From Sminthopsis crassicaudata (taxonomy: Eukaryota): a stretch of 64,000 bases of DNA. The DNA lies in assembly GCF_048593235.1 (NCBI RefSeq), contig NC_133618.1, positions 388,944,562 to 389,008,561 of the forward strand. The letters are read 5' to 3'. The notes below the pieces were generated by a model that searched no databases, had not been told where the DNA came from, and saw only the letters and a program-made list of their open reading frames with translations. Of the stretch, positions 2,014 through 64,000 are shown piece after piece. How positions within the stretch are numbered: the stretch's first letter is position 1; every line of letters begins with the position of its first letter. A program made the translations under genes and the position numbers.

Positions 2014-2447
2014 TGGCCTTCAGCAGTCCTCCCTCCAGGTCATCTCTAGGAGGGCTCTCTTGAGAAGACTTGGAATCTGGGTCAGCATGGATAGGCAGCA
2101 CACCTGACTGTATAGTTATCGAGGATAGAGTCAGGCTATCTTGCCCTATATCCAGCTTCCCCAGGATTTTAATTGCCTCAGCTGCTCCAGACCACAGATG
2201 TTTTCTCCTTGTCCTGTACCTCTATCCTTCCTTCTTCCCACCAGCATCTGTGCTTCTAAACTGTGTGTATGTTCAAACCTGCTTCTTCCACTACTGATTA
2301 TCCTATGGCATACTTAGTTCCTCATCAGTCTGATAGTGTAGGAGCCAGCTCCATCACTCAATTTTACCAGATGGACTATAGGCTTCCCCCCCACTCTTCT
2401 TCTTGCCATTACTTACCTACCTAAAGGCCTAGGTTGGTAGAGTGGGG

Positions 2448-3410
2448 ATGAATGTGGAAGAAGGGGGCATACCGGGCATAGGGCGCCCAAGCCAGGCCCG
2501 ATGGGTGCTTATGCTCCTCCTGTCCACGACCATGTATGGTGCCCACGCCCCGCTGTTGGCCTTGTGTCGAATAGATGGCCATGTCCCTTTCCGCCCCTCT
2601 TCAGCTGTGCTTTGGACGGAACTGACCAAATTGCTGCTATCAGCATTCTCTCTGATGGCCCGACGGCAGCCCAGACTGTGGGACACTCTCCCGTGGCGCC
2701 AGGCTGCCCCTTTTGCACTCTCTGCACTGCTCTACGGTGCCAACAATAACCTCGTCATTCACCTGCAGCGGTACATGGATCCCAGCACCTACCAAGTGAT
2801 GAGCAACCTCAAGATTGGCAGTACAGCTCTCCTGTACTGCCTCTGCCTGAACCGCCGTCTCTCTGCCAGACAGGGGCTGGCACTGCTGCTGCTGACTGGT
2901 GCCGGAGCCTGTTACGCCGCCGCAGGCCTCCAGGATCCGCAAGGCCTCCTCCCACCCCCGCCAGCTGCGGCCATGCCCCTCCACGTGACCCCCCTGGGGC
3001 TGCTGCTGCTGCTCCTCTACTGCCTCATCTCAGGCCTCTCCTCAGTCTACACCGAGCTGCTCATGAAGAGGCAGCGCCTGCCCCTGGCCTTGCAGAACAT
3101 GTTCCTGTACTCCTTTGGGGTACTTATGAACTTGGGGCTCTATGTGGGAGGTGGGCCAGGCCCCGGGCTCCTAGAAGGCTTCTCAGCCTGGGCAGCATTG
3201 GTGGTTCTGAGCCAGGCCCTCAATGGACTGCTCATGTCAGCCATCATGAAGCATGGGAGCAGCATTACCCGGCTCTTTGTCGTCTCCTCTTCCCTGATTG
3301 TCAATGCTGTGCTCTCAGCCACCCTGCTTCACCTCCAGCTCACAGCTGCCTTCTTCCTGGCCCTCCTGCTTATTGGACTGGCTGTACATCTCTATTATGG
3401 AGGCCGGTAG
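2448..3410 (+). CDS. SLC35A4: Probable UDP-sugar transporter SLC35A4 (320 aa, single coding exon)
   Basis: ORF MNVEEGGIPG...LYYGGR with multi-TM nucleotide-sugar transporter motifs (LYGANNNL, TYQVMSNLKI, SGLSSVYTE). The ATG is at 2448; the ORF track starts at an upstream GTG. Confidence 0.97.
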   Translation: MNVEEGGIPGIGRPSQARWVLMLLLSTTMYGAHAPLLALCRIDGHVPFRPSSAVLWTELTKLLLSAFSLMARRQPRLWDTLPWRQAAPFALSALLYGANNNLVIHLQRYMDPSTYQVMSNLKIGSTALLYCLCLNRRLSARQGLALLLLTGAGACYAAAGLQDPQGLLPPPPAAAMPLHVTPLGLLLLLLYCLISGLSSVYTELLMKRQRLPLALQNMFLYSFGVLMNLGLYVGGGPGPGLLEGFSAWAALVVLSQALNGLLMSAIMKHGSSITRLFVVSSSLIVNAVLSATLLHLQLTAAFFLALLLIGLAVHLYYGGR

Positions 3411-13152: not shown

Positions 13153-16100
13153 TTAAACTTTTTTTCTCCTCTCTGTGACTTCTGTTGGGAGATAGGGGAG
13201 AATCAATGAAGCCCTGCTGGAGGATAAAGGCTGGTACCCCAGTCTCATCTCCCCTACTGGTATTCCTCTGTGGTTTAGGACAGAGCTCTAGGACATACTT
13301 GTGTCTCTACTTCTATTGTCTTCCCTATACTTTTCCTATTCATAGTCCTTACCCTGCTGGAGTTGCTTGTTCTGGACTTGGAGTTGTTGGTTCTGTGTGG
13401 CCAGAGAAATGGCATCTTGTAAAACTTCGGACAACAGGATTCGGTGATGGAGCTCCCTGGCAGCTGTCTGCTCCTTCCACAACTCCCGACAAGCCCGGAA
13501 CACCTATGTTTTTCATGGGTAGCTTTGTGATTAGAAGAATTCCAAGAAATCCCACCACCTACCTATTTAGCTGGGGCTTGAGTGCAGCCTGCCAGTATAA
13601 GATGTAGAATTCACAAATAGCATCCACTACTGACCTGCAGCATGTGGCAGGTCTGGGCCCGGGCTCCTTGCACATGCAGCTCATATAGAGCCTCTAGGTC
13701 CTGCTCAGCTGCATCTCGCTCCACTCTCAGTGCCTCCAACTTCAGGACCAGTGCTGTGTGGTCCTGTACCATCCGACTCTCAGCAGTCAGATCTGGGGCC
13801 TGTGATAGAAACCAGGTGTTTACTGAGGGAGAATAAGCCTACTCATCAGCCTTATACCTGGAGATGTGGGACTGACCTGATGTGTTGCTGTTTCCTTGTC
13901 CTGTCCCAACCAGCTTAGCTCCTCTTGGATCTGGGATTGGTGATGTTCCTGAAGCAGCTGCCTATGGGCCTGAGCTAACATAAACTGCAGGGCCACATCA
14001 GGGGCCTGTGAGACAGAACAAGGAGGACTTACATCCTAGTCTTTTCATCTGACCAAGTTCCATTTTCCTCTCCCTTAGAGCAGGAGTATTTAATCAGGGA
14101 TCCATTATATTTTAGGTATCTGTGAACTTGGATGAGGAAAAAAGATTATATATTTATTTTCACTAATTGTTAACTGAATCCTAGCATTTCCTTCAATTAT
14201 GAAAGTAGGCAACAAACCTCAATAGTATTTAAGCTTCACCAGATTGCCAGATTGGGACCACAACACAAAGAAGGTTTAAGAATTCCTGTTCTTCTGATAT
14301 ACAATGTTTTGCATGATTTCAAATATGTAATCGGTATCATATTGCTTGCTTTCTCAAAAGGGGAGGGGAAGGAAGAAAAGAGAGGGAGAAGTAAAATTTG
14401 AAACAAACAACAAAAAAAAGAATATTAAAAATAAAAATTTAGTTAGATTTTAAAAAGAATACCTGCCTAACTTCCCCCATTGGGGTCTATCGGTCTTCCC
14501 CAGTACAAGGTTCCCAATTATAATTACTATCCATACCACAGATTTAGGGGTTCAGCTCTAAAGGCTGTGTATTCCTGAGCAGTAAAATCATAACTACAGT
14601 CTAAGGGAGATGGTAGCTCCTAAAAGAAAAGGAGTTGTGGTCAGACCTCTGTATTGAAGTCCCAAGAACCTGAATCTAAATGTCTATTCTTTTATTTACT
14701 ACTTAGATAGTCTCAGAAAAATAACTTAATCTCTATTGTTCTCAATTTCCTTATCTGGAGAAAATGAGATTGGACTAGATTATCTAAAAGCTTCTTTTTA
14801 GCTCTATAATCCTGTGGTTCAAAAAATGATCACCTGTTCCCGATCATCACCACTCTCACCTAGATAAAACAATGGGACTTTCTCTCCCCCTTCTATAACT
14901 CAACATGCTCCTTTGTGATTCCTTTCCTCCTTTCAGACTTCATGGTATTTATTTTAACCCAATTTCACCCCCAGGAAGGGACATTACACAATGCCATTTG
15001 CCTTCTAGGGAACCCCCCCCATACTCCCTAAAGAAACAAATGAAGCTTTGCCTGTTTCTTGGAGCCCCCAAGAGGATAATTTCTTGATGCTGCTGGCAGG
15101 GGTGACTTCCTTCCCAGGTCCAGAGTTTCTGAAGTACCTGCTGCCAAAAAGAAATATTTTTATTCTAGGCAAAGACAGACAAAGCTGAAGAATCCCAAGG
15201 AAATAGTGTCTGGGATGTAGACCTGAGACTCACCTTGAAGATGCTTCTTGAAAACAGGGGAAAAGGCCTCTTCTAGTTCTAGCACCTAAATGGAGAATGT
15301 GTTGTAATGCAACACCTTCTCTCAAGCCTTCTCTCAAGGATGGAGAGATTTTCATTTTAGTGCAAAAGGTTTGTTTTAAGCAATTATAAATATCACTAAG
15401 GTATAATTGATAACATTGAAAAGAAAGGATTCTAAAATGACAACATACAAATAACAATAACAAACTTTTCAAAAGTTTAAGAATGTTGATCAACAAATGC
15501 CATGATTTATCTTGACTCCAGAGGACTCCTGATGAAACAGGCTACTTCCTGACCAGAGAGGAAAGAATGAAGGCCCATATTGCAACACATTTTTATAGAC
15601 ATGTCCAATGCAAGGATTTGTGATTTTTAAATGGACTATTTTAAGGCAGAGGCAGCTTGATCTAGTGGACAGAGTGCTGGACTTGCAGTCTAGAACATCT
15701 GGGTTTAAATCCTACAGTGACAAGCTAGGCCATGATTATATATACTTTAAATGACAGACAATTCTGTTAAAATTGATTTGTTTGTCCTTCCTTTTTCAAT
15801 AGGGGTAAAGAATAAGTAGGAAGGGAGAGAAAATTAATTCTTAATTGAAAAAAATGAAATTAAAATTTTAAACTAAGGAATAAGATGGTGACATCAGATG
15901 TTAGGTTGCAATAATATTCAGAATACTTATCTTTTTTCCTTCAAGATAAACAGGTATCCAAATAAATAGTTATCAGTGTTTTTTAGTTTGAGTATAGTGC
16001 TTGAGATAAAAGCAGGACTAAAAGGAATACCTAGTAATCCTAGGAAGGAAAATAGTAGGGAAACATCTTTGAAAGAAGATGGAGATCTAGGAATACCTTA

Positions 16101-19100
16101 GGTGGTATATGTACTCCTGGCCATACTCTTTCCTTTCTCTTGAAAATTTGAAAATTATTACTGTTCACTGAAGCCTTTGATCTCTGATTTATTGAAATAG
16201 GACTTTACATCACAAAAATCCCTGCTGCTATAGAAAATAGAATTTTCCATTAAAGTATACAAAGGAGATAGACTTTAACATGTTTATAATTTACACATAT
16301 TGCCTGAGGAGGCTCAGCAATATTAAGTCATCATGGCCCACTTTGTCACTGTAGGATTTGAACCCAGATGTTCTAAATTGCAAGTCCAGCACTCTGTCCA
16401 CAAGACCAAGCTGCCACTGCCTTAAAATAGACCATTTTTAAAAAGCCATAGTAAAGTATTCCTCTTTGTATCCCTAATGGCTGCTTGTCCTCTTGCCTAC
16501 TTCTAGTTCTGTACCAGCTTTGGAATCAAGTACATTGTGAAAGGGTGCTGTAAGAAGAGCCTGAGCCCCAGAGCATTGCAATGTGTGCATTGCAATGAGA
16601 AGACCATATCAAGATCAAGGGAACTGGAGCCAGATACCTGCAGGTTTGGAAGCCTGGTTACAGACGCTCCAGCTCGATTGAGCACCCTGGTCCCCCAGCT
16701 CCGGCTTTGGTTTTTCAGTACCTGTAAATAGCAGGTTCAGTCCATACTTTCCAGAACCCCTGATACCCTACATAGAGGGCTAGTGTCTAGTTCTGTCTCA
16801 CCTTCAATTCCCTGAGGACCAGGCTCAGCTGGGTAAGCTGGCTCTCCTGTAGAGTCGTTCCAGAAAGCCCAGAACGCAGCTCCTGAACAGTGGCGTAACG
16901 AGTGTGGATTTCTTCCAAAGCATCCCATAGTGTGGGAGAAATCTGTTTCCCCTGGCGGGGGTCCCGAACTCCTTCGGCCCCTGCTAGTGAGGCCAAGAGC
17001 AGACCCAAGGGGATGGCTGCCAGAGAGAATAGGCAAGGAGTGGGGCCACTTTAGGTAATGGGGGGGGCCTTTGATATAGTCAAAAAACAATCCTGTCCCC
17101 TCCTCCCAACCTCTCTTGCCAAGAATCACACTGAGCAGCCTCTTTCCACCGAACTGGCACTGAGTAAAAAGCCTGGATGAGGAGCCAATGCAGAGGCCAA
17201 AGCAGGATTTGGTAGCAGAACTTCCTGGTGATTCTCCCCAGAAAGGGTTAAGTCTCATTTCCTCATTTTTTCCTTCCCTCCCTTCTCTCCTTCATACCTC
17301 GGAGATCCAAGTGAAGCAACAGGCTGTTGTAACTATTTCCAAAGAGTAACTGAGTCACGATCCAAGGCAAGGAGCCAGTATGGGCCTTAGAAGCCTTCCC
17401 TGCCAGTACCAGCAATAAGGGGCAGTCCCTACAAGGAGTGACGGCTAAGGTCAGGCACAGTTTAGCTCCTAGTTATGGGTTAAGGAGAATAACTGTCCCT
17501 TATGTGGAACCCTCAAACTGCTGCCCTGGGCTTCACCCCAAGTTGGACTCACAGAGCTTCTGGAAGCTGCAGGACTCTCAATGAGCCTCGACACATGCTT
17601 CTGGCCCAGGGCCTCTTTATGATACTGGGCCCCAGGCAGGATATCGTCAAGGTGAGAAGGGAGCAGGCCCTGGAAGAGAAGATGGTTAAGTTAGTGGCAC
17701 TTCTTCTTAGATTGAGCTCTAAGTTTGTATTTCCTCCCCTCATCCTTTCTGCCAGAGTCCACAGGCTCACAGACCTGTCCAAGCCTTTCATTGCCCTGAG
17801 ATAAAGTTGGCAGCCAGACTTGAAATCAAGGATTTCTGCTTCACTCGCACCTTCTGCTACCCTGGGGGAAAAGGGGGAAATATATAAGTTTGGAGCACTC
17901 CTGGACTATAACCCTCTGCCATAGGTCCCTTCAAAGCATTAAATCCCAGACATAAGAACAAAATGAGCAGGTAACCCATAATCACATAGACAGACTAACC
18001 CTGAATAGGACAGCTGTACAGTGGAGAGAGCACCAGCTCTGAAGTCAGGAAGCCCTGAGTGCAAATATGGTCTCAGACACTTAACACTTTCTAGCTGTGT
18101 GACCCATCACAAGTCACTTAACNNNNNNNNNNNNNNNNNNNNNNNNNNNNNNNNNNNNNNNNNNNNNNNNNNNNNNNNNNNNNNNNNNNNNNNNNNNNNN
18201 NNNNNNNNNNNNNNNNNNNNNNNNNNNNNNNNNNNNNNNNNNNNNNNNNNNNNNNNNNNNNNNNNNNNNNNNNNNNNNNNNNNNNNNNNNNNNNCAAAAC
18301 TCAGTAGTCAGGCTTTTGTGGGAATGGTGCTAGGAGGTGGGGAGGAAGGGAGAGCAGTACTAAGAAAAGATATTCACAACCTGGGCAAAGTAGCATACTT
18401 ACAGACCCAGTGGGGACACATCCAGGAAATTCAGGTCACTAGTTCCAGGTAATAATAAGTCTCGACCCGTCCCACTAGAAGTGAGCTAAAGGGAAGGAGA
18501 AAATGTGAGGGATAAGTCTGTGTAGAACTCATAAAAACTTCCAAATCTTGGAGAAAACTTTTCAGGGCTCCTCAATTACTGAAAATGACTTTTAAGCTCT
18601 TTTCACCTGCACTAGACTTAGGGTCCGGAGGGAAGGTTCAGAAGCACTGTGAAGTTGAGTTTCCTCAAACAGCATTGCCAGCAGCTGGAAATTATTAAGG
18701 TAAAGGTGGAGTGGGGATGAGAGAAAAGATTGGTTCGGAGTCCAAACAAACCCAGACTATATGGTTAGGTAAGGTGGATTCTAGATCCTCACCTGAGGAA
18801 CCAGATCCAATTGCTTGGCTTCTCTTCCCCTAATGATTACAGACACACTGTAACCTCTGGATACTGAGCCCAACACAGCCCGAATGTTCTTCATAAACTC
18901 CTGCTCTGCTTCCTAAATTAATAGGCAGGAGTTCACCTTTTTGGGGAAAGAAATCATCTCCCTGTTCCACCAGGTTCCTAGATCTTCAGATTTGGTTACC
19001 CTACTCTTCCTTTGTCCCAGCCCATGTTCCCCTCCTCTCCCCGAAATAGCATTCTCCGACTTGGAAAGGCATAGAAAATTGTCTCAAGAGCAGTATGGGG

Positions 19101-19700
19101 TATGATGTTAAGAACCAACAGAATAAGACAAGTGGCACAAGGGCTTGCCCCCCCCCACCTTTCTCCCCTCTCCCGCCTTCTTATTTTACCTGTGCATGTT
19201 CTGGGCCTAGGACTCGGTCAAATGTGAATCGATGCTCCTAGATGTAAGACCAGAGTTATGAAGATCAATTCTCATTTACAGCCTCTTTTTCCTCCATCCA
19301 TTTTTCCCACCTTTCCCAACCCCAACAATACCAGAGTCTCAGGTTCTCCTAGATCTAGCAAGAGCATTTTAGAACCATGTAGAAGGAATCTGAGGCTTCC
19401 AGTGTCATGACCTATAATAGAGAGTTCACTGTAACATTCTGTTTTTTTGGTTTGTTTGTTTGGTTTTTTTTCCATGCTGACAGCAGAAAACAGCCCCAGC
19501 CTACCACCTCCAGGATTCCTTCTAGGCTTGACCTCTTAGAAGGAATTTCTCACCTGCCTCTGACAAGGATGTTGCTTTTACAACCACTGTTACTGTTGCA
19601 GACCCAACCTGGAAGGGAGAGAAGATAATGAGGCCCCGAGCCTGAGCCAAAAGGAAGGTTCGGAGGGGAAGTTTCTGCTCACCTGCTCACTGCCAGCCAT
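13153..19700 (-). CDS. Kinesin-like protein with degenerate motor domain and C-terminal coiled coils (about 595 aa, 19 coding exons)
   Basis: Phase-compatible exons, 5' to 3': 19700-19683, 19608-19554, 19411-19332, 19237-19190, 18912-18793, 18684-18607, 18485-18403, 17861-17775, 17669-17553, 17428-17298, 17016-16802, 16721-16638, 16560-16501 (tentative), 15285-15234, 15137-15052 (GC donor), 14005-13877, 13799-13635, 13503-13353, 13181-13153. The total is 1788 nt with no internal stop. Kinesin-like segments include EHRFTFDRVLGPEHAQ, GSVSRGYSVSVIIRG, GRDLLLP, VAEGASEAEI, RACSLLTLTI and LLFGNSYNSLLLHL. The position between SLC35A4 and CD14 matches mouse E230025N22Rik as recalled. Confidence 0.85.
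18010..18122 (+). mobile_element. WSINE1-like SINE truncated by an assembly gap (intron of the kinesin-like gene)
   Basis: gtggagagagcaccagctctgaagtcaggaag...caagtcacttaac. Confidence 0.8.
18123..18294. other. Assembly gap (N run)
   Basis: 172 N. It is intronic, and the flanking exon phases join without needing a hidden exon. Confidence 0.99.
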
Positions 19701-20864: not shown

Positions 20865-22920
20865 TCAGGCAAATCCTCTGACCCCGCACAGCAGCACCAA
20901 GGCTGCGGTCCCAGAGACCTGAAAGGCTAGCGGCGAGCCCACGGAGGGCCTGCTTCCTCTGGAAGGAACTCCTTCACAGTCCTCCGACGCTTCCTCCCTC
21001 CGCGACCTGGCTAACGCACTGCTTTGGGTAAAGGGGTTTCCTTCGAGGACCAGCTCGGTCCCCTGGTCCTTTAGGACCGGCTGCTTCGTCAGCAGGTTGT
21101 AGCTTAGGACCAGCTGCTGTAGCTTGTGTGGCAGAGACTTCGGCACACACCTCAGCTTTGCGTGGGACAAGTTAAGGGAGGTCAGGGTGGGTGGCCAGGT
21201 GCACTGAACGGAGGGAGCATTGCTCAGCTCGTTATAACTGATGTCCAGTCGCTGCACTTTTAGCCCCTTCGCCTCCAGACCCCGGCACACTCCTCCCAGG
21301 GACTGGAGGCTGGTGTTCCTAAGCGCCAGCTCCCGCAGCTCCTGGAGCTCCTTGAGGCAGAGGGCCGCGGTTAAGCCACTCTCTCCGATTTCTGGATTGT
21401 CCGACAGATCTAGAGAGTTTAATTCCTTGAAGGGGGCCAAGATGGAGCAGGGCACATTGCTCAGGCCCGAATCAGTCAAGCTCAGCGTCTTCAGTCCGGG
21501 TTTTAGCCAAGTCGATATCGCCGCTATTAAATTGCTCTCTCCGGCTAGCGACACTCTGTTGAGCTTCAAGGCTTTCAGGGCCAGGGCCTCATCACCAGGA
21601 GATCGCGGTTGGAGGGGCGGGTGCGAAACCCCCAGATCTTCCAGCGCCAGCTCCTGAGTCCGCGTGTAGGTCAGCGCCTGCAGGAGCTGGTACAGAAGGG
21701 GAGCCGGGACCTGGGCATCTTTTAGCTTCAGCCGTCTCAGGCGCAGCGATCGCAGCAAGTCTGCGGCTTTTCTGATGTCGGCATCGCCGCCTTTCGGCAA
21801 AAAGATTTCCAAGTTGTGACCGCCCCCGTGGATCTCCACCTCTATAGAGGAAAGGCACATCTGAAGACTATTCCAGTTGGGCTCCGGGGTGGAAAAGTTG
21901 CAGAAGCAGTTATCACCCTCTTCGTCCAGGATGCAAGTGGCTGAGGATGGCCAGGGAAGCACCAGCAGGGAGGAGAGCAGCAGCAGCGACAACCGCTGCC
22001 AGGGGACCTGGGAATGACATCAGCTGTTAATCTCAAGGCTAGCTAGTCCGCTGCTGGGAAACAGGAGAATCAGGGCAGCCGGAATGGCCGAAGTATTAGT
22101 GTCCAGGTCCAAAAGGTGACCCCCAAAGTTAGTCACAGATGGGTGTGGCCAGGTTTCTCAAAAGAATTTCCACTCTTGAACCCATCTCCAAGTCAAGGGG
22201 CAAAGTTTATTGTAATCATAACGCCAATGGAAGAAGGCTAAGTTCCTAACGGATTTAGCAAAGAACCGGGGGCTTGGGACAAATTTATCCAGTTCTTAAA
22301 GTAGATGGTATGCTAATTTTATAGTCCCGAGGTAAATTGCAGAGTGTCTATTCACTATTGTCTCAGGAATTTGGTTGTCACTGACCAGTGTTTCCTATAT
22401 CTGTCAGTAATATTTGTAGGACTATTCTAAAGGGAGGAAGACCTTAGAATCTATAACAGATTGTTAGAACAAAAGCACTCCAAAGTCGGGAGACCTCATC
22501 ACTGCTGTTTCCCCTAGAAGCATTAGGACTACTTTAACCTCAGAACCCAGCCCAAAGACTTCATTTTCTCTTTTTTCAAATACTATCTTTCCCCAATCCT
22601 CTCCCAGCCTCCCGCTCAACAACCCTAGTTAAGTAGCTCCAGACCAGCGCTGAAAAGCTTTAGGGTTTGGGAGAGGCACAGATAGAAAACTGGACCAGGG
22701 ATCCAGAGGATAGTCTCAGACATTTCCCAGGTGTGTCACCCTGTTTACCTCAGTTCCTCATCAGTAAAAATCATTTTAAAATGAGCTGGAGAAGGAAATG
22801 GCAAGCCACTGGAGTATCTTTGCCAAAACAAACAAAAACCCAAATGAGATCATAGAGAGTCGAACAGAGTTAACAACAAAAGTGGGGGGGAGGTAAGGTG
22901 CGACATAGAACACTCACCAT
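20865..22920 (-). CDS. CD14: Monocyte differentiation antigen CD14 (381 aa)
   Basis: Exon 1 contributes only the ATG (22920-22918, Kozak ccaccATG, donor GTGAGT). The intron is 22917-22008 and exon 2 is 22007-20865. The protein has a signal peptide, N-terminal CILDEEGDNCFCNFSTPEPNW, LRRs (LDLSDNP, LDISYN, LNLS, LVLSYN, LEGNPF) and a GPI-type tail VSGTAALVLLCGVRGFA. An ATG-only first exon is the known CD14 structure. Confidence 0.96.
22690..22880 (+). mobile_element. MAR1/MIR-type SINE in the CD14 intron
   Basis: aaatgagctggagaaggaaatggcaagccact...gtatctttgccaa...agagtcgaaca is the RTE-derived tail of MAR1. Confidence 0.75.
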
Positions 22921-63037: not shown

Positions 63038-64000
63038 TTAGCAGGAAAACCACCCCAATCCTGGGCTCTCATTTTCTCTTGGCTCACCTAAAGCTTCTAG
63101 GAGGCGAAGGGACACAGCATTCTTGGCAACTTCGTGCCCGCTTGGCCCCTCTTTAGTTACAACTACCCAGATGAGGCCACTGAAAGGCATGGGGTAACCA
63201 GGAATCACTACTTGGTACCAGAAGCGGTGCCAGCCTGCGGGCCCAGCTCCCAAGCACTTAGTGAGGAATACGGGCATGCCTAGGTGCCTCTGTTGGCACA
63301 CGGCCTCGAGTGTGGTCTGGGCACAGTTGTGGGGCACTGGGGTCCCTAATTTCTCAGGTAAGGTCCTATGACTTATCTCAGGCCCCAACCCCCGAAATAA
63401 AGGACCTTCTGTTTGCTGTCGGAGTCGTTGCTTCAGGTCGGGTTTCAGCCATTCTACTGTCACCTGCTCACCACAGAGCTTTGAGCGCCCTGCCAGACAG
63501 AGGATAACATAGGAGTGATGAAAGGTGGTAACCTAAGTTTGGCAACAAGTATTTGGCCACACCCCACCCCCTCAAACACTAAACCCTTTTTACTCCCTAA
63601 CCTATTCTTGAGCTTTCCCACTCCCTCAAATGTGTATCTAGTATAACTTTCTTAGCAACAGACAAGGCTACCCTGTTTTTCTCGACTTTACCCTCTTTCT
63701 TTAATGTTACTCCTACCTTCTACTAGAGCTTTCTTGGCCATGGCTGCCGCCCGGTGGGAACTAAACTTGAGCAGTGCAATCTGTGTGTTGGGGTACATGA
63801 GGCTGGGGAGTAGCAGTGCTTCCTGCAGACCGGACCCGAGAGGCTGCAGGGCCTGAAGCAAGGCCTGGTGGTCCAGGGTTGGTGGCAGCCCATCCAGGGT
63901 CAGCTCACATTTCTCAGTGCTCCGGCAGACCAGCAGCGGGCAGGCAGGTCGAAGAGGGTGATTGTGAAGAGTGGCGATGGCAGCCTGGGCCCCGCGGCGG
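63038..64000 (-). CDS. DND1: Dead end protein homolog 1, last two coding exons (5' part outside the window)
   Basis: The exon from beyond 64000 to 63717 encodes [32 protein letters not shown]...[20 protein letters not shown]. Exon 63489-63038 encodes [25 protein letters not shown]...[11 protein letters not shown]...*, covering RRM2 and the dsRBD-like domain. Confidence 0.96.

Follow-up and report, generated by a model that had tools for sequence, protein, structure and literature searches.

A conserved mammalian gene in the fat-tailed dunnart encodes a probable kinesin-derived head without the nucleotide-binding motifs

We analyzed a 64,000-nucleotide stretch of the genome of the fat-tailed dunnart, Sminthopsis crassicaudata (NCBI RefSeq assembly GCF_048593235.1, contig NC_133618.1). 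The whole stretch is called the window below, and all positions follow its numbering. An initial annotation of the segment 17298-18912 had proposed a kinesin fold, stripped of its nucleotide-handling motifs, in an intact gene. The segment is the middle of a real protein-coding gene of this marsupial, LOC141556791. The gene probably encodes a kinesin-derived head that lost its ATP motifs before the split between marsupials and eutherians, has been kept by selection, and acts non-catalytically as a scaffold or regulatory subunit.

The exons were put together from the reverse-strand reading by their splice sites. LOC141556791 comprises 18 coding exons on the minus strand (19700-13153) that encode a 575-residue open frame followed by a stop codon. 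The first 12 exons (19700 to 16638, minus strand) form one open frame of 372 codons, and the other six complete the gene. The coding exons are bounded by AG acceptors and GT donors, with a single GC donor after exon 14. Our 575-residue model is identical over its whole length to RefSeq isoform X2 (P0146), and a whole-library search with exon 11 retrieved a 100%-identical protein of 535 residues, XP_074147671.1, named “uncharacterized protein LOC141556791 isoform X7”. The exons and the intron that holds the assembly gap are as follows.

19683..19700, minus strand: coding exon 1, with the start codon; encodes MAGSEQ, matching the start of isoform X2 (P0146)
19554..19608, minus strand: exon 2, beta-1 equivalent; the RxRP (N4) position reads VVVKAT
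19332..19411, minus strand: exon 3
19190..19237, minus strand: exon 4, FTFDRVLG (beta-2 equivalent), aligned to the kinesin F.FD.VF element; outside 17298-18912
18793..18912, minus strand: exon 5, alpha-1, SRGYSVSV (beta-3) and the P-loop remnant RGREAKQLD; an in-frame cassette
18607..18684, minus strand: exon 6, alpha-2 and beta-4 equivalents (LLAMLFEE, TLSLVQ)
18403..18485, minus strand: exon 7, RDLL element
17862..18402, minus strand: intron 7, holding the assembly gap 18123-18294
17775..17861, minus strand: exon 8, EGASE and the alpha-3 equivalent; terminates at the lost switch I
17553..17669, minus strand: exon 9, RACSLLTLTIS (in place of SSRSH and beta-6) and LRVLQLPEA (in place of beta-7 and DLAGSE)
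17298..17428, minus strand: exon 10, DCPLLLVLAG, HTGSLPWIV and LLFGNS (alpha-4, alpha-5 and beta-8 remnants)
16802..17016, minus strand: exon 11, alpha-6 remnant and conserved neck-like helices (PTLWDA ... LRELK)
16638..16721, minus strand: exon 12, an in-frame cassette
15234..15285, minus strand: exon 13
15052..15137, minus strand: exon 14, with the GC donor (15052|gcaaag) and a NAGNAG acceptor
13877..14005, minus strand: exon 15, where the Pro/Gly-poor helical tail begins
13635..13799, minus strand: exon 16, tail
13353..13503, minus strand: exon 17, tail
13153..13181, minus strand: exon 18, including the stop codon

The scaffold strings quoted in the initial annotation (FTFDRVLG, SRGYSVSV, RDLL, EGASE, SLLTLTI and LLFGNS) were all recovered on the minus strand, in kinesin order and within properly spliced exons, with FTFDRVLG lying outside the annotated segment. 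The string KGLDRACS is the product of the exon 8/9 junction. The Pro/Gly-poor helical tail spans residues ~420-575.

The ancestry of the head was assessed with two alignments, one of residues 1-345 from 30 orthologues (A1) and one of 65 sequences (A2). When the A1 profile was compared with all PDB sequences, the first 21 matches were all kinesin motor domains, the best being KIFC3 (5wde) with an E value of 1.4e-4, followed by kinesin-8, kinesin-1, KIF1A and KIF13B. The match was colinear, with profile positions 10-181 running along chain residues 6-186. The A2 profile gave the same picture together with a weak second colinear stretch (profile 251-300 against KIF1A chain 326-375), in which GSLPWIV...LLEGN...LDP...LLQAAL aligned to alpha-5, beta-8 and alpha-6 of KIF1A. 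Among the Pfam families, the kinesin motor family PF00225 was the commonest match, found in 27 of the 30 orthologues scanned singly with a best E value of 1.7e-4, and all of these matches were sub-threshold: the scores listed ranged from 11.5 to 19 bits (dunnart 12.3 bits, E 0.083) against a gathering score of 29.3 bits. PF16796 was matched by 12 of the 30, and the Pfam matches always fell on the N-terminal half of the model. Pfam gave no match for single exons because the pieces are too short, and it gave nothing kinesin-like for the full-length protein P0001 because that isoform lacks exon 5.

On sequence grounds, descent from a kinesin motor is established for the first ~180 residues and likely for the remaining head, up to ~290 residues. 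The likeness to kinesin motors (PF00225; KIFC3 5wde, kinesin-1 1goj and KIF1A 1i6i) comprises colinearity from beta-1 to alpha-3 and, weakly, from alpha-5 to alpha-6, the common scaffold motifs F.FD.V, GY, LF.E, DLL and LL..GN, and an N-terminal head followed by helices, as in N-type kinesins. By contrast with those motors, the family lacks RxRP, the P-loop (deleted), SSRSH and DxxGxE, misses about 40-60 residues in total from the catalytic and microtubule-binding loops, and stays below the Pfam cut-off. The parent kinesin family is ambiguous, as the best PDB match is a kinesin-14, yet the domains are arranged as in an N-type kinesin.

The motif losses were then located individually. The P-loop GxxxxGK[ST] (N1) is absent, its position being taken by RGREAKQLD in the dunnart sequence and by RGRETEAPR in the consensus of the family. 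In the profile alignments, a gap of 11-12 residues coincides exactly with the kinesin GQTGxGKT and the residues just after it. The P-loop loss proposed by the initial annotation, with GREAKQLD at the position, was thus confirmed, but not as a mere substitution, because about 11-12 residues are deleted there. The other losses that it had named were found as described. Switch I (NxxSSRSH, N2) is replaced by GLDRACSLLT, with RACS standing for SSRSH within the quoted KGLDRACS, and switch II (DxxGxE, N3) by LRVLQLPEA, with LQLPEA standing for DLAGSE and the quoted QLPEAL in place. HIPYRxSKLT is replaced by HTGSLPWIV in exon 10. These three replacements were aligned manually, and the profile gave no significant alignment in the part that holds the two switches. 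A further loss, unmentioned previously, is that of RxRP (N4, beta-1), which reads VVVKAT in the dunnart, the consensus having VVVEVE. From alpha-3 to alpha-5 the family has ~70 residues against ~100 in kinesin-1 and ~120 in KIF1A, so that roughly 30-50 are missing from this part.

The initial annotation had proposed to check whether the substitutions are common to orthologues, and they are: identical motif losses were found in all marsupial and eutherian sequences of both alignments. Because they are common to marsupials and eutherians, the losses are older than the split between the two groups. The residues that replaced the motifs are in turn conserved. No variation is seen at G96 in A1 or A2 or at E98 in A1, and E98 is nearly invariant in A2; R97 occurs in at least 90% of the rows of both alignments, and R95 is invariant or nearly so in A1. 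Other conserved blocks are TLSLVQ, DCPLL..LAG, GSLPW and the P..W of the neck. Judged from these alignments, the motif loss is ancestral and was followed by conservation of the new sequence.

A rival explanation is that the gene still encodes an active kinesin, with its catalytic motifs in an unrecognized exon or in one concealed by the assembly gap, and the gap, with an estimated length of 172, does fall within the annotated segment. Its position argues otherwise. The N run 18123-18294 falls within intron 7 (18402-17862), well away from exon 5, which has the P-loop position, and from exon 9, which has that of switch II. Both positions are aligned to their kinesin counterparts, and they are fully sequenced, as is switch I at the exon 8/9 junction, and the 105-nucleotide intron 8 between exons 8 and 9 is completely read. 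The end of exon 7 (CT) and the start of exon 8 (G) join to form an in-frame Leu codon, and the same joining is made in the RefSeq model of this genome (P0146). No extra residues occur at the exon 7/8 junction in any of the 30 orthologues of A1, and the kinesin profile alignments of A1 and A2 cross this junction uninterrupted. The corresponding introns of Dromiciops, Monodelphis and koala, which are 336-686 nucleotides long and contain no N, are free of P-loop, switch I and switch II patterns in all forward frames. A gap exon that restores GxxxxGKT or DLAGSE, which the initial annotation had named as a finding that would overturn it, was therefore not found in the location of the gap, the orthologue junctions or the marsupial introns. 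The active-kinesin explanation is already contradicted by these observations, and we consider it extremely improbable.

Two features of these introns were observed in passing. The low-coordinate flank of the gap (17940-18122, minus strand) resembles a marsupial short interspersed element (SINE) by eye, which may explain the break in the assembly at 18123-18294. The 105 nucleotides of intron 8 (17670-17774, minus strand) are open and continue the frame of exons 8 and 9, so retention of this intron would add 35 residues at the lost switch I with the frame kept; these residues contain no SSRSH.

Selection on the gene was estimated by mapping the dunnart exons one by one onto the Dromiciops, Monodelphis and koala loci and calculating the Nei-Gojobori ratio of nonsynonymous to synonymous substitution rates (dN/dS) with bootstrapping for the six pairs. 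Exons 2-18 were located in order, nearly gapless and without stop codons in all three species, and exon lengths were conserved across the four marsupials. Whole-protein dN/dS was 0.29-0.43 over the six pairs, with dS of 0.24-0.46. It was 0.21-0.43 for residues 1-290 and 0.31-0.42 for the remaining residues, and the bootstrap upper bounds were at most 0.69. The gene is clearly constrained by purifying selection, with constraint on the dead head no weaker than on the tail.

Orthologues are widespread among mammals. A search with a cat-family orthologue returned 192 proteins at E <= 1e-5, the eutherian matches coming from carnivores, ruminants, whales, bats, rodents, lagomorphs, primates (macaques, squirrel monkey and lemurs), armadillo, aardvark and others. 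With a marsupial orthologue as the query, about 12 marsupial proteins were returned, from opossum, koala, monito del monte, wallaby, sugar glider, bilby and brushtail possum. Almost all of the 192 proteins carry the name “uncharacterized protein”; in UniRef, the entries of Mus spicilegus and Jaculus are named “Riken cDNA E230025N22 gene”, and two whale entries are named “Kinesin motor domain-containing protein”. The single whole-library search, made with exon 11 as the query, returned mammalian proteins and repeat-type noise. A GC-rich orthologue sequence, P0011, may come from a monotreme.

These data also bear on the possibility that the open frame is accidental and belongs to a unitary or decaying pseudogene or to an artefact of gene prediction. 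The absence of the catalytic motifs, the fast evolution, and the differences among the gene models of different species could be read in that way. Such an origin is, however, already contradicted by the open frame over 18 exons, by the same exon lengths without stops in three other marsupials at dS distances of 0.27-0.40, by dN/dS values well below 1, and by more than 190 orthologous proteins, and we regard it as very improbable. The intact gene described in the initial annotation was in this respect upheld.

Transcription was found outside the dunnart. The Logan contig L004 (SRR24475064, 1310 nucleotides) has exons 11 onward spliced together in one open reading frame (ORF). It was taken as rodent because its best identities (74-77%) are to the gerbil and deer-mouse orthologues, and it is a spliced transcript contig of an apparently rodent orthologue. 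Indirect evidence of expression comes from the isoforms up to X7 that RefSeq lists for LOC141556791 and from the presence of the mouse-type orthologue E230025N22 in expression tables. All or part of the window is contained in 17 public sequencing runs, none of them recorded as RNA; in the best small-contig run, 0.26 of the sampled words were found, which equals the coding-sequence share of the gene (1728 of 6551 bases) and is a hint only.

Exons 5, 9 and 12 each have a length that is a multiple of three; RefSeq isoform X7 skips exon 5, isoforms X4 and X5 skip exon 12, and the opossum and possum models skip exon 9. Many eutherian models have a gap of ~42 residues that was not assigned to an exon. 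Because of the NAGNAG acceptor of exon 14, X4 and X5 differ by a single Ala. The skipping of exons 5, 9 and 12 is either alternative splicing or a prediction artefact; if the skipping isoforms are real, the domain has no compact kinesin fold in them.

Structure prediction with AlphaFold2 gave a mean predicted local distance difference test score (pLDDT) of 42.8 for A1, and a mean pLDDT of 50.0 with a predicted template modeling (pTM) score of 0.51 for A2. The elements of the A2 model follow each other as in kinesins, in the order beta-1, beta-2, alpha-1, beta-3, alpha-2, beta-4, alpha-3, beta-6 and beta-7, and then two short helices, beta-8, alpha-6 and two neck helices. Their three-dimensional arrangement had no significant kinesin match in Foldseek or VIA. 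The top Foldseek matches were kinesins with E values of 0.036-0.05, but with template modeling scores of about 0.2. In VIA, Z was at most 5.7, and only the neck helices superposed, on kinesin-3 necks. The alignments held mammalian orthologues only, and the low AlphaFold confidence is for this reason no evidence against a kinesin fold. The retained fold of the initial annotation was nevertheless not demonstrated, given two low-confidence runs and no significant structural match.

Several of these results weigh against the proposed interpretation. Both AlphaFold2 runs were of low confidence, and the arrangement of the A2 model matched no kinesin significantly. No Pfam kinesin score reaches the gathering cut-off, and alignment to kinesins is weak over the C-terminal half of the head. 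In-frame exons 5, 9 or 12 are skipped in annotated isoforms and in many orthologue models, and L004 has an alternative 5' end without the kinesin-like head, as in Peromyscus isoform X1 (P0014), which suggests a head-less isoform in rodents. Marsupial and eutherian orthologues are only ~50% identical, a sign of fast evolution, and the gene has been listed with dN/dS above 1 in hares (PMC6065068). The protein is fast-evolving for a mammalian gene, which hints at a reproductive or immune setting.

The same observations raise the alternative that the head is no longer kinesin-folded and is instead a rearranged or partly disordered remnant, with the conserved function residing mainly in the neck and tail helices. 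The low AlphaFold confidence and missing structural match, the deletion of about 40-60 core residues, the in-frame skipping of exons 5 and 9 in annotated models, and the rodent isoforms and transcript contig without the head are all compatible with such a remnant. Against it, purifying selection on the head is at least as strong as on the tail, many head positions are invariant, and the predicted secondary-structure elements stand in kinesin order. We consider this alternative doubtful, and we continue to favor a selectively maintained, kinesin-derived head with a non-catalytic role.

How such a head might act can be proposed in outline. Since all four nucleotide motifs are absent, kinesin-type ATP binding and hydrolysis would be lost, and the protein would therefore act non-catalytically. 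The degenerate head may have become a surface for protein interactions, with its own motifs (RGRE, TLSLVQ, DCPLL..LAG, GSLPWIV and RPTLWDA), and the long, helical, Pro/Gly-poor tail may provide oligomerization or partner binding. We would favor a role as a scaffold or regulatory subunit over one as a motor. With L11, alpha-4 and L12 shortened or replaced, binding to microtubules is doubtful.

The nearest functional analogy, which the initial annotation had also drawn, is with yeast Vik1 and Cik1, whose non-catalytic motor homology domains pair with Kar3 (PMC3384419, PMC4338441). Like them, the LOC141556791 product appears to combine a kinesin-like head without a nucleotide site with a long helical region. 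By this analogy, the dead head could pair through its helical tail with an active kinesin and tune the microtubule binding of that partner, for which the Kar3-Vik1/Cik1 pairs provide the precedent. The analogy is limited in several respects. Vik1 and Cik1 are fungal and carry the head at the C-terminus, whereas the head studied here is N-terminal; the microtubule-binding elements L11, alpha-4 and L12 are shortened or replaced; and no Vik1 or Cik1 chain was among the PDB profile matches with E values up to 10. A Vik1-like partner of this kind seems to us improbable. There is likewise only a small chance that the dead head is the non-catalytic second head of a heterodimeric motor, a mammalian counterpart of Vik1/Cik1, or that it regulates the microtubule cytoskeleton independently of nucleotide. 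The preferred interpretation is still a scaffold or regulatory subunit, of which Vik1-like pairing with an active kinesin would be an attractive special case.

Non-catalytic kinesin-like proteins are a known kind. KIF26A and KIF26B (kinesin-11) and Drosophila Costal2 are animal members of the kinesin superfamily and are considered to be scaffolds or regulators devoid of motor ATPase activity. They have full-length, readily recognizable motor domains and bind microtubules; compared with them, the LOC141556791 family is far more eroded. To our knowledge, inventories of mammalian kinesins hold ~45 KIF genes, and the LOC141556791 orthologues are not among them. What was already known of the gene is the RefSeq model and the automatic kinesin label in the two whale entries. 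In our literature search, gene lists were the only places where the E230025N22-type gene name occurred, and we found no account of the family. If the proposed interpretation is true, mammals carry an unrecognized additional gene of the kinesin superfamily, and a head remnant kept by selection without its ATP site would be a clean natural case of an enzyme fold in non-catalytic use. The gene is directly testable because a mouse-type orthologue exists.

LOC141556791 is placed between SLC35A4 and CD14. The neighboring ORFs in the window are as follows.

2442-3410, plus strand: SLC35A4-type nucleotide-sugar transporter ORF (Pfam PF04142, E 1e-30)
20865-21992, minus strand: CD14-type leucine-rich repeat (LRR) gene ORF (Pfam LRR families)
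42462-42833, minus strand: NDUFA2-like ORF, named by eye from its translation; no Pfam match
63038-63463, minus strand: DND1 double-stranded RNA-binding domain ORF (Pfam, E 7e-25)

Exons that are TMCO6-like and IK-like were also named by eye from their translations, and the neighbors put the window in a conserved SLC35A4 - CD14 - TMCO6 - NDUFA2 - IK - DND1 block. Dromiciops has the same CD14-gene-SLC35A4 order. In Monodelphis (opossum) and koala, a CD14-type LRR gene lies directly upstream, and the flank examined ends before SLC35A4. A second assembly gap (24035-24230, 196 N) separates the CD14-type gene from the TMCO6-like region. Two ORFs on the minus strand, at 28322-29125 (without a Pfam match) and 49859-50326, resemble C-terminal fragments of ORF2 from the long interspersed element LINE-1 and share RYHYTP...CWRGCG.

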